Assembly (NCBI GenBank): GCA_964035545.1
Contig: OZ037772.1
Span: 6,184,889 to 6,248,888, forward strand
Origin: Bugula neritina
Lineage: Eukaryota; Animalia; Bryozoa
Reading direction: 5' to 3'
Length of the DNA stretch: 64,000 bases
The notes beneath the pieces were generated by a model. It was not told the DNA's origin. It saw only the letters and a program-made list of their open reading frames with translations, and did not search any database. The number at the start of each line of letters is the position of its first letter. Position 1 is the stretch's first letter. Position numbers and translations under genes: made by a program. Of this stretch, positions 7,821-25,800 are shown in pieces.

Positions 7821-10800
7821 TTACAAATATCCACGGAATTTCATTTCTGTGGTCTTGAGAGAATAATAATATCCTTTCCAGGTTTTCCAGGTCACACCAA
7901 TTGCATACAGACTATGGGTGCCATTCAAGTACTTGCCATTCAAATTGGAAGAATGACACTTGCCATACCACCATGCACCATGATACATAACTGCACAATT
8001 GCCCGAGTGAACATCATTGTCTTTATCAGTTGTCGAAAACATTGATTCATTCTGAACTAAAAAGCTGTCCCCTAAAAATTAAAGTCAACTATGAGGAAAC
8101 TTGTATCAATATATTATTGAAACAAACAAAACGATACCTACACACACACACACGCACACACACGCACACACTCGCACACACACGCACACACACGCACACA
8201 CACGCACACACACGCACACACACGCACACACACGCACACACACGCACACACACGCACACACACACACACACACACACACACACATATATATAGATATATA
8301 TATATATATATATATATATATATATATATATATATATATATATATATATATACATACATACATACATACATATTTATATATCTTTATGAGCTAGCAATTT
8401 GATTATAAATAAGTATACGAGAAACATTGTTGATTTATTACTTTATTAGGCAAAGTAATTATACTGATATTTCGGGTACCACTGTACCCATCTTCAGAGT
8501 AGCAATGAATGAAATTCAAAAAATATTACGTTACGTTAGACACTATGCATGACACAAAGAATAGAGGGTGGCAGTTATTGTAAATTATTGAAACTGAGGG
8601 AGATATTCTTAATTTATATATATATATATATATATATATATAATATATATATATATATATATATATATATATATATATATATATATATATATATATATAT
8701 ATATATATATATATATATATATATATAATATATATATATATATATATATATATATATATATATATATATATATATATATATATATATTGGCGTTAACAAT
8801 TTAGTTATTTTCAATAGACCCTTTTCAAATGTCCCTCTAGGGGCTTTTATAATTTGAAGTTGTCTCCTCCCACCCGGTATATGGGGGGAATCTCCATGAT
8901 ATATAGAAAGTCATAATGTGTGAGGACTATTGCTAGCGTGAATTTTTTCTTTTCTGAGATAAATATTTTGGCCTAAGCATACATAATAGCAGTTCCAGAA
9001 ATCTTTTAAAAATTTTCTTTCTTGACAAATCTTGAGAAAAATAAACTTCAAAGCATGTTTGTGGTTTTGGTTACTGAGCAAGTTGAAGTGGTAACTATGA
9101 TACAAGTATCATTAATTATTTGTTATACTGGCTGTCATGTTCAATTTATAGCTGTTGACCTTTCAGCTTTTTGGTCAGAATTTGCTGTTAACACAGTCCT
9201 AGAGCTTTGCTAGTGAATGAGACAGCAGATTAGCTGTTAGCATTTTCAATTAATTATATACTTATAATGCACTTATGTTATGAGAATGGACCTTCGGACT
9301 AATGGACCTTCGGAATATTGACTAGTCAATATTCCGAAGGTCCATTAGTCCGAAGGTCCATTGGTCCGAAGGTCCATTAGTCCGAAAATTACTAGACACA
9401 TGATAGTAAAGAGCATCCTCACTGAGAATATCATTGATTTCACTCACAATCTAGTTTAAGTTCTTGCTCTGTTAATGCTGTATGTGGGTGGCATGCGTGT
9501 TGCCTACTTGTTATTGTTTAGCCTGAGATTACACCATGACCAGAAAACAGCTGCCACAATTAGGGTTGCATCATCTATCAACATTCCATTATGGCTGCTT
9601 TATAAACAAAGTACACAGCAAGCTATTCATTTATAGCCTGTCAGCTAACAGGCCTGTAATTAATAATGTAATAAAGATTACATTTGCAGTGTATAAATCA
9701 CCTATATTTTATAGAAAGTCTATAAAAGCTATTGAAAATTTCAAAAAAGTTGCTTTGAAGAACAGAAATATTTACAACATGGCTTTTAAATTTTGATTCT
9801 ATAGCACAATTAGGTGAGGTTTTATTTGGCTGGACTGAATTCTTATATACTAATAGTGTGGCCCCAGCCAGGCAGTTACAGCTAGAAGGTTGCCCTTATC
9901 TACATATCTTGTGGATATGTTTGGTTTGGTATATTATGGTGTGCAGCTTCGGTTATTTGATTTTAGAGTAGTGTCCAAGATGTTTATAATTTTTAGTCTT
10001 CAATGCAATTTTACAGATATCCCTAATCAAAGATATTTTTAATCACAAAGAGATATTTTTAATTGAAATTGATATATGCATAATTTAACTAAATGTATTT
10101 TCAGTGGATTTGTATCTCTAATAATTATAGGATATGATATACATCTAACTGCATGTACACCAATATTTACAGTTAGGTGCAGAAATGGAGATTTTGACCA
10201 AAAATTCCCCACTGAATAGCATTTTGTTGAAAGCTTTTGACTTGTGTTAGATGAGTCCTACCAACATATTTGGAATTGTAGAAAGCTATGGATACAACTG
10301 TTAGACAAGGGCTGACTAGTGTATCATATTTGTTAGATTGTTGGAGATTTGTTGAAAGTGTTAGACAGAGCCCTATTTGATTATTTTGTTAGATTGTTAG
10401 ATTGTTGAAAATTCAATGCTTTTATATATAAAAAAAGTGTTGGAGATTTGTTGAAAGTGTTAGACAGAGCCCTATCTGATTATTTTGTTAGATTGTTAGA
10501 TTGTTGAAAATTCAATGCTTTTATATATAAAAAAGTGTTGGAGATTTGTTGAAAGTGTTAGACAGAGCCCTATCTGATTATTTTGTTAGATTGTTAGATT
10601 GTTGGAAATTCAATGCTTTTATATATCTACACTTTTAGAGATTTGTTGAAAGTGTTAGACAGAGCCCTATCAAATTATTTTGTTAGATTGTTGAAAATTC
10701 AATGCTTTTATATATAAAAAAGTGTTGGAGATTTGTTGAAAGTGTTAGACAGAGCCCTATCTGATTATTTTGTTAGATTGTTAGATTGTTGAAAATTCAA

Positions 10801-22800: not shown

Positions 22801-25800
22801 AAAAGCATTGAATTTTCAACAATCTAACAATCTAACAAAATAATCAGATAGGGCTCTGTCTAACACTTTCAACAAATCTCCAACATTTTTTTATATATAA
22901 AAGCATTGAATTTTCAACAATCTAACAATCTAACAAAATAATCAGATAGGGCTCTGTCTAACACTTTCAACAAATCTCCAACACTTTTTTATATATAAAA
23001 GCATTGAATTTTCAACAATCTAACAATCTAACAAAATAATCAGATAGGGCTCTGTCTAACACTTTCAACAAATCTTCAACACTTTTTTATATATAAAAGC
23101 ATTGGATTTTCAACAATCTAACAATCTAACAAAATAATCAGATAGGGCTCTGTCTAACACTTTCAACAAATCTCCAACATTTTTTTATATATAAAAGCAT
23201 TGAATTTTCAACAATCTAACAATCTAACAAAATAATCAGATAGGGCTCTGTCTAACACTTTCAACAAATCTCCAACACTTTTTTTATATATAAAAGCATT
23301 GAATTTTCAACAATCTAACAATCTAACAAAATAATCAGATAGGGCTCTGTCTAACACTTTCAACAAATCTCCAACACTTTTTTATATATAAAAGCATTGA
23401 ATTTTCAACAATCTAACAATCTAACAAAATAATCAGATAGGGCTCTGTCTAACACTTTCAACAAATCTCCAACATTTTTTTATATATAAAAGCATTGAAT
23501 TTTCAACAATCTAACAATCTAACAAAATAATCAGATAGGGCTCTGTCTAACACTTTCAACAAATCTCCAACACTTTTTTATATATAAAAGCATTGAATTT
23601 TCAACAATCTAACAATCTAACAAAATAATCAGATAGGGCTCTGTCTAACACTTTCAACAAATCTCCAACATTTTTTTATATATAAAAGCATTGAATTTTC
23701 AACAATCTAACAATCTAACAAAATAATCAGATAGGGCTCTGTCTAACACTTTCAACAAATCTCCAACACTTTTTTATATATAAAAGCATTGAATTTTCAA
23801 CAATCTAACAATCTAACAAAATAATCAGATAGGGCTCTGTCTAACACTTTCAACAAATCTCCAACATTTTTTTATATATAAAAGCATTGAATTTTCAACA
23901 ATCTAACAATCTAACAAAATAATCAGATAGGGCTCTGTCTAACACTTTCAACAAATCTCCAACACTTTTTTTATATATAAAAGCATTGAATTTTCAACAA
24001 TCTAACAATCTAACAAAATAATCAGATAGGGCTCTGTCTAACACTTTCAACAAATCTCCAACACTTTTTTATATATAAAAGCATTGAATTTTCAACAATC
24101 TAACAATCTAACAAAATAATCAGATAGGGCTCTGTCTAACACTTTCAACAAATCTCCAACATTTTTTTATATATAAAAGCATTGAATTTTCAACAATCTA
24201 ACAATCTAACAAAATAATCAGATAGGGCTCTGTCTAACACTTTCAACAAATCTCCAACACTTTTTTATATATAAAAGCATTGAATTTTCAACAATCTAAC
24301 AATCTAACAAAATAATCAGATAGGGCTCTGTCTAACACTTTCAACAAATCTCCAACATTTTTTTATATATAAAAGCATTGAATTTTCAACAATCTAACAA
24401 TCTAACAAAATAATCAGATAGGGCTCTGTCTAACACTTTCAACAAATCTCCAACACTTTTTTATATATAAAAGCATTGAATTTTCAACAATCTAACAATC
24501 TAACAAAATAATCAGATAGGGCTCTGTCTAACACTTTCAACAAATCTCCAACATTTTTTTATATATAAAAGCATTGAATTTTCAACAATCTAACAATCTA
24601 ACAAAATAATCAGATAGGGCTCTGTCTAACACTTTCAACAAATCTCCAACACTTTTTTATATATAAAAGCATTGAATTTTCAACAATCTAACAATCTAAC
24701 AAAATAATCAGATAGGGCTCTGTCTAACACTTTCAACAAATCTCCAACATTTTTTTATATATAAAAGCATTGAATTTTCAACAATCTAACAATCTAACAA
24801 AATAATCAGATAGGGCTCTGTCTAACACTTTCAACAAATCTCCAACACTTTTTTTATATATAAAAGCATTGAATTTTCAACAATCTAACAATCTAACAAA
24901 ATAATCAGATAGGGCTCTGTCTAACACTTTCAACAAATCTCCAACACTTTTTTATATATAAAAGCATTGAATTTTCAACAATCTAACAATCTAACAAAAT
25001 AATCAGATAGGGCTCTGTCTAACACTTTCAACAAATCTCCAACATTTTTTTATATATAAAAGCATTGAATTTTCAACAATCTAACAATCTAACAAAATAA
25101 TCAGATAGGGCTCTGTCTAACACTTTCAACAAATCTCCAACACTTTTTTATATATAAAAGCATTGAATTTTCAACAATCTAACAATCTAACAAAATAATC
25201 AGATAGGGCTCTGTCTAACACTTTCAACAAATCTCCAACATTTTTTTATATATAAAAGCATTGAATTTTCAACAATCTAACAATCTAACAAAATAATCAG
25301 ATAGGGCTCTGTCTAACACTTTCAACAAATCTCCAACACTTTTTTATATATAAAAGCATTGAATTTTCAACAATCTAACAATCTAACAAAATAATCAGAT
25401 AGGGCTCTGTCTAACACTTTCAACAAATCTCCAAAAGTGTAGATATATAACATAATGTGGAGAAAATGAAAATGTTGTATAGTAAATTCTTATATGTGAT
25501 TTCCAATATCTCCATTACTGCACCTACCTCAATATTTATAGTTCTTTGTGACCAATAATATATTATATTAAATAAATGATTTTCACAAATAAAACATCAG
25601 TAAAAGTTTAATACTATCTGGAACATCTATGTATAGTCAGTTAACCATATGCCTTTATTGCATAAGTTATGGCACTCCAGTAATTCGTCAGATTGAAATT
25701 TTCAATAGCTTTTATAGATTTTTTATAAAATATAAGTGATTTATACACTGCAAATGTGATTATTAATTACAGGCTTGTTAGCTGACAGGCTATAAATGAA

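Follow-up and report, generated by a model that had tools for sequence, protein, structure and literature searches.

The window analysed here, a 64,000-nt stretch of the genome of the bryozoan Bugula neritina (contig OZ037772.1 of assembly GCA_964035545.1, positions 6,184,889 to 6,248,888 of the forward strand; C8:6184889-6248888 in our numbering), contains what is almost certainly an intact, recently inserted and autonomous cut-and-paste DDE transposon of the KDZ superfamily with a conserved two-gene architecture. One gene encodes the KDZ transposase and the other, which lies head-to-head with it, encodes an ATPase related to the DUF3987 (PF13148) helicases. Eukaryotic DNA transposons are usually thought to need a transposase alone, and Helitrons are the main elements among them known to have a helicase. 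In the present family, the DDE (KDZ) transposase has remained paired with a predicted MCM-like helicase, of a type seen elsewhere in phages and in mobile elements of bacteria, across several genomes and over a deep divergence, with a tandem array beside the helicase gene. What appears to be new is a helicase-bearing clade of KDZ transposons with the CxC5 domain and Zisupton-like ends. Our best overall explanation, which joins this architecture to a replication-linked role of the helicase, has in our judgement about an even chance of being right.

Ends, copies and genes of the element

The 216-Mb assembly was searched for further copies of the element, and 18 stretches were compared. DNA searches located both genes at ∼99% identity at three further places besides the window, together with diverged copies. 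The limits of the element (Table 1) were then given by the comparison of five copies, all of which start with CAGTTAGGTGCAG and end with CTGCACCTACCTC; in the window copy, the tips read CAGTTAGG from 10170 and CCTACCTC up to 25530, and the window sequence outside these two positions had no match to the other copies in this comparison. Each of the five copies is flanked by a perfect 8-bp duplication of its own (AATATTTA in the window, AGACATAG in copy B, ATCTTTTA in copy C, TAAAAATG in copy D and CTCAATCA in copy G). The terminal inverted repeats (TIRs) are 27 bp long, with four mismatches between the left end and the reverse-complemented right end. A preliminary description of this DNA had proposed 23-bp TAG...CTA TIRs. 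The copies and their duplications place the ends 4 bp further outward on each side, and therefore the tips are CAG.../...CTC. The motif TAGGTGCAGWAATGGAGA, present at 10174 (+) and 25526 (-), has four sites in the window against 0.02 expected by chance.

This correction also removes the link to Academ elements that had been read from the TAG tips, because these are not the real tips. Academ elements are large eukaryotic DNA transposons that can carry a helicase-like gene and generate a 3-4 bp duplication. The relationship was rejected on the KDZ transposase, the 8-bp duplication and the tips of the window element.

Three copies, namely those of the window, B and C, have both genes intact and are ∼99% identical, which, along with the TIRs and the individual 8-bp duplications, bears out the proposal of a young autonomous element. 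Both genes are also present in copy D, where insertions disrupt the transposase gene, and in the degenerate copy E (76%), so that the two genes are found together in four ∼99% copies and in one 76% copy. Copy F contains only the transposase gene, and copies G and H contain only the helicase gene. Protein-level searches of the 216-Mb genome found no KDZ(CxC5) or DUF3987-like locus outside the copies of this transposon family. Since the genome has no free DUF3987-like gene, there is no host gene available as the source of a single capture, one of the cases that had been named as undoing the proposal.

The transposase gene was modelled with three exons encoding 556 amino acids (aa). Its long exon (451 aa, 11724-13076 on the minus strand) matched both CxC5 (PF18718; 39.7 bits, cut-off 26.9) and KDZ (PF18758; 37.2 bits, cut-off 26.6), as had been anticipated from the sequence, and these were the only Pfam domains at E ≤ 0.1, with no match to SWIM or to other domains. 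A six-frame search of the genome with the KDZ profile gave 37.7-38.8 bits for the five copies. We found 58 homologues of the transposase carrying the same CxC5 and KDZ domain pair. Residues D282, D440, D471 and E511 and the C/H positions between them are present in the window sequence and conserved in no fewer than 18 of the 19 sequences of the alignment. Exons 1 and 2 were deduced from open frames, phase-0 GT-AG sites and conservation in the 76% and 89% copies.

The structure of the helicase gene could be read from spliced contigs. All of its seven introns correspond to spliced GT-AG joints in contigs of four runs belonging to four studies, and the eight joined exons form a single open frame of 475 aa from the ATG at 17712 to the stop codon at 20512-20514. 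By these contigs, the helicase gene is expressed as well as spliced. When scored against DUF3987, the window exons reached 12.7, 13.9 and 16.8 bits, which are values for exon fragments rather than for the spliced protein and lie below the cut-off of 27 bits; the three weak matches are colinear, at profile positions 4-46, 119-194 and 317-353. The full-length helicase family was reached through the transposase homologues, which led to contigs of other assemblies (L031) where the gene is intronless or intron-poor. Against a profile of 30 full-length homologues (alignment A2), the spliced window protein scored 181 bits (E 1.4e-57) over aa 46-464, a match that takes in Walker A, Walker B (ILDEIEG), further family motifs and the winged-helix region. 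All 30 homologues carry a precomputed PF13148 match and, when rescored, P0112 and P0139 gave 104.7 and 101.4 bits, respectively; homologue P0094 gave 55 bits. Walker A (APPGSRKT) and Walker B (NILDEIEG) are intact in the window protein and conserved across the family.

Other routes to the family gave little. When PF13148 was run against the six-frame translation of the genome, there was no match because the helicase exons are too short for the model. An exhaustive representative search with a 153-aa exon open reading frame (ORF) from L019 recovered 52 short fragments, all at the level of single exons, with neither a bacterial nor a full-length relative among them. The profile of alignment A1 had only chance matches to parathyroid hormone among the sequences of the Protein Data Bank (PDB). 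An AlphaFold model of P0094, a 237-aa fragment modelled with the same alignment, was discarded (predicted local distance difference test, pLDDT, 62; predicted template modelling score, pTM, 0.27).

The AlphaFold model of the homologue P0112 had a pLDDT of 86 and a pTM of 0.73. Its best structural matches were MCM2-7, archaeal MCM and MCM8/9 (Z 14-16.6, ∼250-275 residues aligned), followed by BrxL, RavA, BchI, ComM and Cch of the staphylococcal cassette chromosome mec (SCCmec; Z 10.0). Residues 360-465 resembled winged-helix proteins (Z 6-7), and TnsC and MuB reached a Z of ∼6, the generic level of AAA+ proteins. As judged from this model, the window protein belongs to a family whose AAA+ core is MCM-like (superfamily 6) and precedes a winged helix. 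Comparison of the window gene with that of copy G, which is 89% identical, gave a ratio of non-synonymous to synonymous substitution (dN/dS) of 0.165, and all the splice sites were kept; by this measure, the helicase gene is under purifying selection inside the transposon.

Both ends of the element contain a tandem array with a period of 98 bp (12.3 and 48.2 copies), and each array is the reverse complement of the other one, as noticed at the outset. The 7-mer TGTTAGA follows the same orientation: 38 forward motifs are found on the left (35 in the array and three in the subterminal unique region) and 142 reverse motifs in the right array, as against one in the 9.2-kb interior. Because the arrays multiply this oriented 7-mer ∼180-fold, we infer that they may be platforms for protein binding.

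Table 1. Positions in the window of the KDZ transposon and of the features inside it.
Feature	Position	Strand	Remarks
Left target-site duplication	10162-10169		AATATTTA; same 8-mer at 25531-25538
Whole element	10170-25530		15,361 bp; ends set by comparing five copies
Left TIR	10170-10196	+	CAGTTAGGTGCAGAAATGGAGATTTTG; similarity to other copies begins at 10170
Left subterminal unique region	10197-10338	+	Three oriented TGTTAGA motifs (motif census)
Left 98-bp tandem array	10339-11535	+	12.3 units, 90% match (Tandem Repeats Finder)
KDZ transposase exon 3	11721-13076	-	aa 106-556 and stop; CxC5 and KDZ domains (Pfam)
KDZ transposase exon 2, predicted	13514-13669	-	Open frame, phase-0 AG/GT sites; also kept in the diverged copies E and F
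KDZ transposase exon 1, predicted	14043-14201	-	ATG at 14201; open frame, donor GTGAGT; aa conservation of 83-87% in copies E and F
(AT)52 microsatellite	15269-15372		Spacer
Rearranged LTR-retrotransposon fragment (LTR, long terminal repeat)	15400-17636		Inverted LTR arms 15497-15882 and 17245-17635 flank remnants of pol-like ORFs
Helicase exon 1	17640-17810	+	ATG at 17712; contigs join 17810 to 17975 over a GT..AG intron
Helicase exon 2	17975-18194	+	Ends inside Walker A (APPGSRKT, aa 104-111)
Helicase exon 3	18400-18510	+	Spliced contigs
Helicase exon 4	18653-18916	+	Walker B (NILDEIEG, aa 177-184)
Helicase exon 5	19085-19275	+	Spliced contigs
Helicase exon 6	19546-19671	+	Spliced contigs
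Helicase exon 7	19942-20127	+	Spliced contigs
Helicase exon 8	20284-20514	+	Includes stop 20512-20514; aligns to C-terminal winged helix of homologues
Right 98-bp tandem array	20707-25434	-	48.2 units, 97% match (Tandem Repeats Finder); inverted with respect to left array
Right TIR	25504-25530	-	Reverse complement GAGGTAGGTGCAGTAATGGAGATATTG
Right target-site duplication	25531-25538		AATATTTA; 8-mer matching left flank

The gene pair in other genomes and among known systems

The same gene pair was present on contigs from at least five other assemblies. A KDZ and CxC5 gene stands head-to-head with a DUF3987 gene on L029/L030, L031, L032, L034 (NCBI GCA_029782575.1), L035 and L036, and the two genes are also linked on L019, so that the linkage elsewhere on which the proposal had been made to depend was found in other genomes. 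Contigs L025-L028, where the helicase gene is present and the upstream sequence is too short, were left out of this tally. A scan for the tip core combined with a perfect 8-bp duplication yielded complete elements of 7,008 bp on L031 (duplication CTATTAGC, tips GATAAAGGTGCAG / CATTAAGGTGCAG) and 6,490 bp on L036 (duplication GAGGGAGT). The TIRs of these two elements measure 23-36 bp and their tip core, AGGTGCAG, is shared with the window element. The compact relatives are 5.8-7 kb long and some of them are intronless.

Every two-gene element contains a long tandem array between the 3′ end of the helicase gene and the TIR (127 bp x7 in L031, 156 bp x7.7 in L036 and 153 bp in L030). At the opposite end, the relatives have one unit or a fragment at most, compared with 12 units of 98 bp in the window element, whose helicase side has 48. 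Among the elements with enough flanking sequence, the pairing, the gene order and the helicase-side array are kept from ∼58% down to ∼33% transposase identity. Moreover, from element to element, the pairwise identities of the transposase change in step with those of the helicase, a pattern that fits co-divergence of the two proteins, although the pairs compared are not independent. The recurring gene pair, the tip core AGGTGCAG, the 8-bp duplication and the helicase-side array therefore make up a clade-defining architecture rather than a one-off capture.

Among the closest known systems is Zisupton, whose elements have TIRs and 8-bp duplications (PMC12730594). The likeness to Zisupton (Bohne et al. 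2012, cited here after PMC12730594 and PMC9297572) extends to a KDZ-type DDE transposase (PF18758), multi-exon genes and animal hosts. The canonical transposases, however, reach ∼1,400 aa and have CxC4 and SWIM domains (10.1101/2024.08.15.608186; PMC9297572), a long architecture that differs from the 556-aa window protein with CxC5 and no SWIM match. The later accounts of Zisupton, as far as they go, mention neither a helicase partner nor a helicase-side array, the original description being outside the scope of this comparison. Kyakuja elements have 7-bp duplications, CA..TG tips and no TIRs (PMC12730594), unlike the window element with its 8-bp duplication and TIRs. Kyakuja and Dileera resemble it in being large KDZ elements (6-11 kb or more) with a second conserved gene beside the transposase, but they inhabit fungi and their cargo is a TET/JBP dioxygenase (PMC12730594) or, in Cryptococcus, ORFs without recognisable domains (10.1101/2024.08.15.608186), instead of an AAA+ helicase. 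We found no description of a KDZ or Zisupton element with DUF3987, or of KDZ with a helicase, in the literature searched, Repbase and Dfam being outside that search. The suggestion of a new transposon type is not supported as such; the element is more aptly described as a member of a new, conserved two-gene clade, which lies inside the known KDZ superfamily and has Zisupton-like 8-bp duplications.

As regards the helicase, DUF3987 proteins are superfamily 6 replicative helicases found in phages and in mobile elements, and have a winged helix-turn-helix at the C terminus (PMC4889955), and one bacterial member is a proven 5′-3′ helicase (PMC11724360). The phage and bacterial proteins, such as AgaPH (PMC11724360; PMC4889955; PMC5862659), share Walker A and B and the location in mobile elements with the window protein, and the Pfam family and the MCM-like core followed by a winged helix with its homologues. 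They differ in their partner, which in prokaryotes is typically a primase (PMC4889955), fused or adjacent and of the archaeo-eukaryotic (AEP) or DnaG type, and is here a DDE transposase. They differ also in their host, which is here a eukaryote whose gene has seven spliceosomal introns; in a survey of double-stranded DNA viruses, DUF3987-type helicases were not found in eukaryotic viruses (PMC4889955). SCCmec offers a parallel of another kind, since it is an excising and integrating mobile element with its own MCM-like helicase (Cch, PDB 5dgk; Z 10.0), although its host is bacterial, its recombinase is a serine recombinase and Cch belongs to a family other than DUF3987. Finally, Mu (MuA/MuB), Tn7 (TnsB/TnsC) and IS21 (IstA/IstB) likewise combine a DDE transposase with an element-encoded AAA+ ATPase, but these elements are prokaryotic and their ATPases are not MCM-like helicases, the similarity being that of AAA+ proteins in general (Z ∼6).

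The family also records how a replication gene of prokaryotic or viral origin passed long ago into the transposons of animals and later gained introns. The transposase and helicase genes of such elements are likely to have been mis-annotated as host genes or as contamination.

The ESM Atlas clusters of DUF3987 proteins nearest to P0112 came mostly from tailed phages and Bacteroidota, and one of them has the MCM winged-helix domain PF21100. Another nearby cluster of 71 members is 94% eukaryotic, with Rotifera as its commonest phylum, a hint of further hosts of helicase-bearing elements.

Possible roles of the helicase

The presence of a helicase gene next to a transposase gene could be explained by a role in copying the element, by a regulatory role in transposition or by a benefit that has nothing to do with the DNA steps of transposition. 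We favour the first of these, in which the helicase would load at or near the iteron-like arrays and unwind the element for copying by host polymerases in connection with transposition, and would put it just short of, or at most at, an even chance. The transposase would recognise the TIRs, and probably also the oriented TGTTAGA motifs, and would cut and reinsert the element with an 8-bp stagger. The helicase would be an ATP-driven motor acting on the element's own DNA, and the unwound DNA would be copied by host polymerases during or just after excision or strand transfer, so that a cut-and-paste element would gain copies through helicase-linked copying. This replication-linked role is favoured because the nearest folds and the characterised relatives are replicative helicases of mobile elements, and because an iteron-like array adjoins the gene. 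The model would parallel the role that is thought to be played by the MCM-like Cch for SCCmec and the one that DUF3987 helicases play in phages and in integrative elements. Should the helicase have a part in mobility, a cut-and-paste element would have a new route by which to gain copies or choose its targets, and the pair would be a tractable two-protein test system, given its intronless 5.8-7 kb versions.

Several points weigh against this proposal. No primase domain or further conserved ORF was found in the window element or in the compact 5.8-7 kb relatives, and the window element has no polymerase gene. In addition, a 2.8-kb element at L033 9116-11887 has only the KDZ gene, together with the tips GAGACTGGTGCAG / ...CTGCACCCTTGTG, the 8-bp duplication CCAGCGAG and the tip core GGTGCAG. 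Its KDZ protein is 32% identical and has no CxC5 match, and the contig is probably from an animal because ephrin-receptor, Ig and fn3 exons lie on it. Not all relatives, it follows, depend on a helicase in cis and, together with the lack of a primase, this element counts against an obligatory replicative role. Subterminal repeat arrays are common transposase-binding features in other superfamilies, so the arrays described here need not be origins. On L019 (8987-17177), the KDZ and DUF3987-like genes are co-directional, the sole exception to the head-to-head order, which may be due to an inversion, a composite of two copies or a misassembly. As for the proteins, the fold was modelled on P0112, which is 29% identical to the window protein. 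The runs behind the splicing are presumed to be RNA, with at least one (X1) labelled RNA-Seq, and exons 1 and 2 of the KDZ gene, as well as its expression, are predicted rather than RNA-supported. Prediction of a complex for the intronless L034 pair (P0013 residues 50-524 with P0112) gave a score of 0.00 and weighs neither way.

A stronger form of the replication-linked role, in which the clade, having acquired a phage- or plasmid-type MCM-like helicase and an iteron-like array, would undergo self-driven replication, whether at the fork formed by strand transfer or on the element after its excision, is tentative and on balance rather doubtful. If true, no earlier cut-and-paste transposon of eukaryotes would have had a replication function encoded by the element itself, and these would also be the first eukaryotic counterpart of the prokaryotic systems of transposase plus AAA+ ATPase.

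Prokaryotic DDE transposons repeatedly pair their transposase with an AAA+ ATPase (Mu, Tn7 and IS21), and this precedent raises the alternative that the ATPase is a regulator similar to MuB, TnsC or IstB. Such a protein would bind target or donor DNA, recruit or activate the transposase, choose the target, confer immunity or remodel the transpososome, without any replication. The shared divergent control region of the two genes and their apparent co-divergence would suit a regulator, TnsC and MuB do appear among the structural matches, and the missing primase and polymerase genes fit a non-replicative role. On the other hand, with Z values of ∼6, TnsC and MuB are far more distant than the MCM helicases (Z 14-16.6) and Cch (Z 10), and the single DUF3987 protein studied biochemically is a helicase (PMC11724360). 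We regard a purely regulatory role as possible but unlikely.

The helicase could also be cargo, retained for a benefit such as countering host silencing or DNA-damage responses, or for its use to the host, and uninvolved in the DNA steps of transposition. Extra genes are a known feature of KDZ elements (TET/JBP in fungi, PMC12730594; the Cryptococcus ORFs, 10.1101/2024.08.15.608186), the KDZ-only element of L033 has the same tip core and an 8-bp duplication, and derivative G lacks a transposase gene but still has an intact helicase gene. Against this stand the persistence of the pairing, the gene order and the helicase-side array from ∼58% to ∼33% transposase identity, the purifying selection within the transposon and the lack of a domesticated or free helicase copy in this genome; besides, a role that does not concern DNA would hardly call for a DNA helicase. 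Taken together, these arguments make simple cargo quite improbable. Lastly, the foreign LTR-retrotransposon fragment in the spacer and the position of the element between inverted copies of another repeat might suggest a chance composite, restricted to this lineage, of two unrelated elements, or of a host gene and a transposon, nested in one TIR pair, but near-identical copies all share both genes and ends, and the same genes occupy duplication-bounded elements in three genomes (window, L031 and L036) and are adjacent on at least four more contigs, so that this possibility is vanishingly small and was rejected along with host-gene capture.

Spacer, rearranged copies and neighbouring repeats

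The preliminary description had the TIRs and arrays enclosing exactly two intact, spliced genes transcribed outward. Two intact outward genes are present and the splicing of the helicase gene was seen; that of the KDZ gene is a prediction, and the spacer also contains a rearranged fragment of an abundant LTR retrotransposon. The two LTR arms of this fragment are ∼390 bp long, 97% complementary and face outward to the two genes. At many other loci, the arm sequence (∼475 bp) is found as paired direct LTRs separated by 4.5-7 kb, with 92-95% identity. Contig cover of helicase exon 1 starts at 17640, 5 bases past the right arm. The outward arms may now act as divergent promoters of both genes. In the compact relatives, 0.6-1.5 kb separate the two genes. 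A perfect (AT)55 tract, comparable to the perfect (AT)52 tract of the window element, occupies 11021-11130 of L030, in the intergenic spacer of a related element, and no long (AT)n tract is present in L031. That two diverged lineages share such a tract in the spacer may be due to chance because (AT)n is frequent in the window (8284-8388 and 8612-8788).

Three copies of the element showed rearrangements. Copy C (L004-L006, G000:C4:11703001-11733000) is 22.8 kb long, and its left 6.15 kb, from the tip to the equivalent of window position 16322 and including the transposase gene, are doubled in tandem. Position 16322 is also the exact point to which the second left tip is joined, and the duplication ATCTTTTA is found only at the outer ends, a structure that could have arisen by rearrangement or by an aberrant event of a one-ended or replicative kind. 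Copy D (L007-L009, G000:C5:8693001-8723000) contains two later insertions, of 4.3 kb at the equivalent of 11807-11813 (7-bp overlap) and of 4.7 kb at 16351-16355 (5-bp overlap); as the former lies inside a transposase exon, this copy is dead for transposase. Copy G (L015-L016, G000:C4:16747097-16752110) is a 5-kb deletion derivative with an 8-bp duplication of its own, in which the transposase gene is gone and the helicase gene is intact. Its synonymous divergence from the window copy steps from 0.17 for aa 1-295 to 0.88 for aa 296-475, which suggests recombination between subfamilies. Furthermore, the terminal ∼165 bp of the element were found at at least 25 other loci of the genome with 80-92% identity, matches that suggest short non-autonomous relatives. 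The segment 7036-7402 of the window was rejected as a small derivative element because no duplication was present at any offset.

An inverted repeat (9333-9744 against 26096-25693, 94% alike) encloses the element region. It was rejected as the boundary of the element because the other copies do not share these flanks. The repeat is ∼415 bp long, and its two inverted copies around the transposon (9285-9744 and 25693-26112, 94%) are accompanied by a third at 31166-31596. Each copy ends in 16-bp tandem units, TCCGAAGGTCCATTAG, and positions 9285-9362 form a perfect 78-bp palindrome; the KDZ element may have inserted into this repeat, which would then be a foldback or long-TIR element. Further ends like those of the KDZ transposon itself (TAGGTGCAGTAATGGAGAA...), with 81-90% likeness along ∼70 bp, were found at 7334-7404 (-), 26487-26557 (-) and 3291-3360, with no partner end for any of the three.

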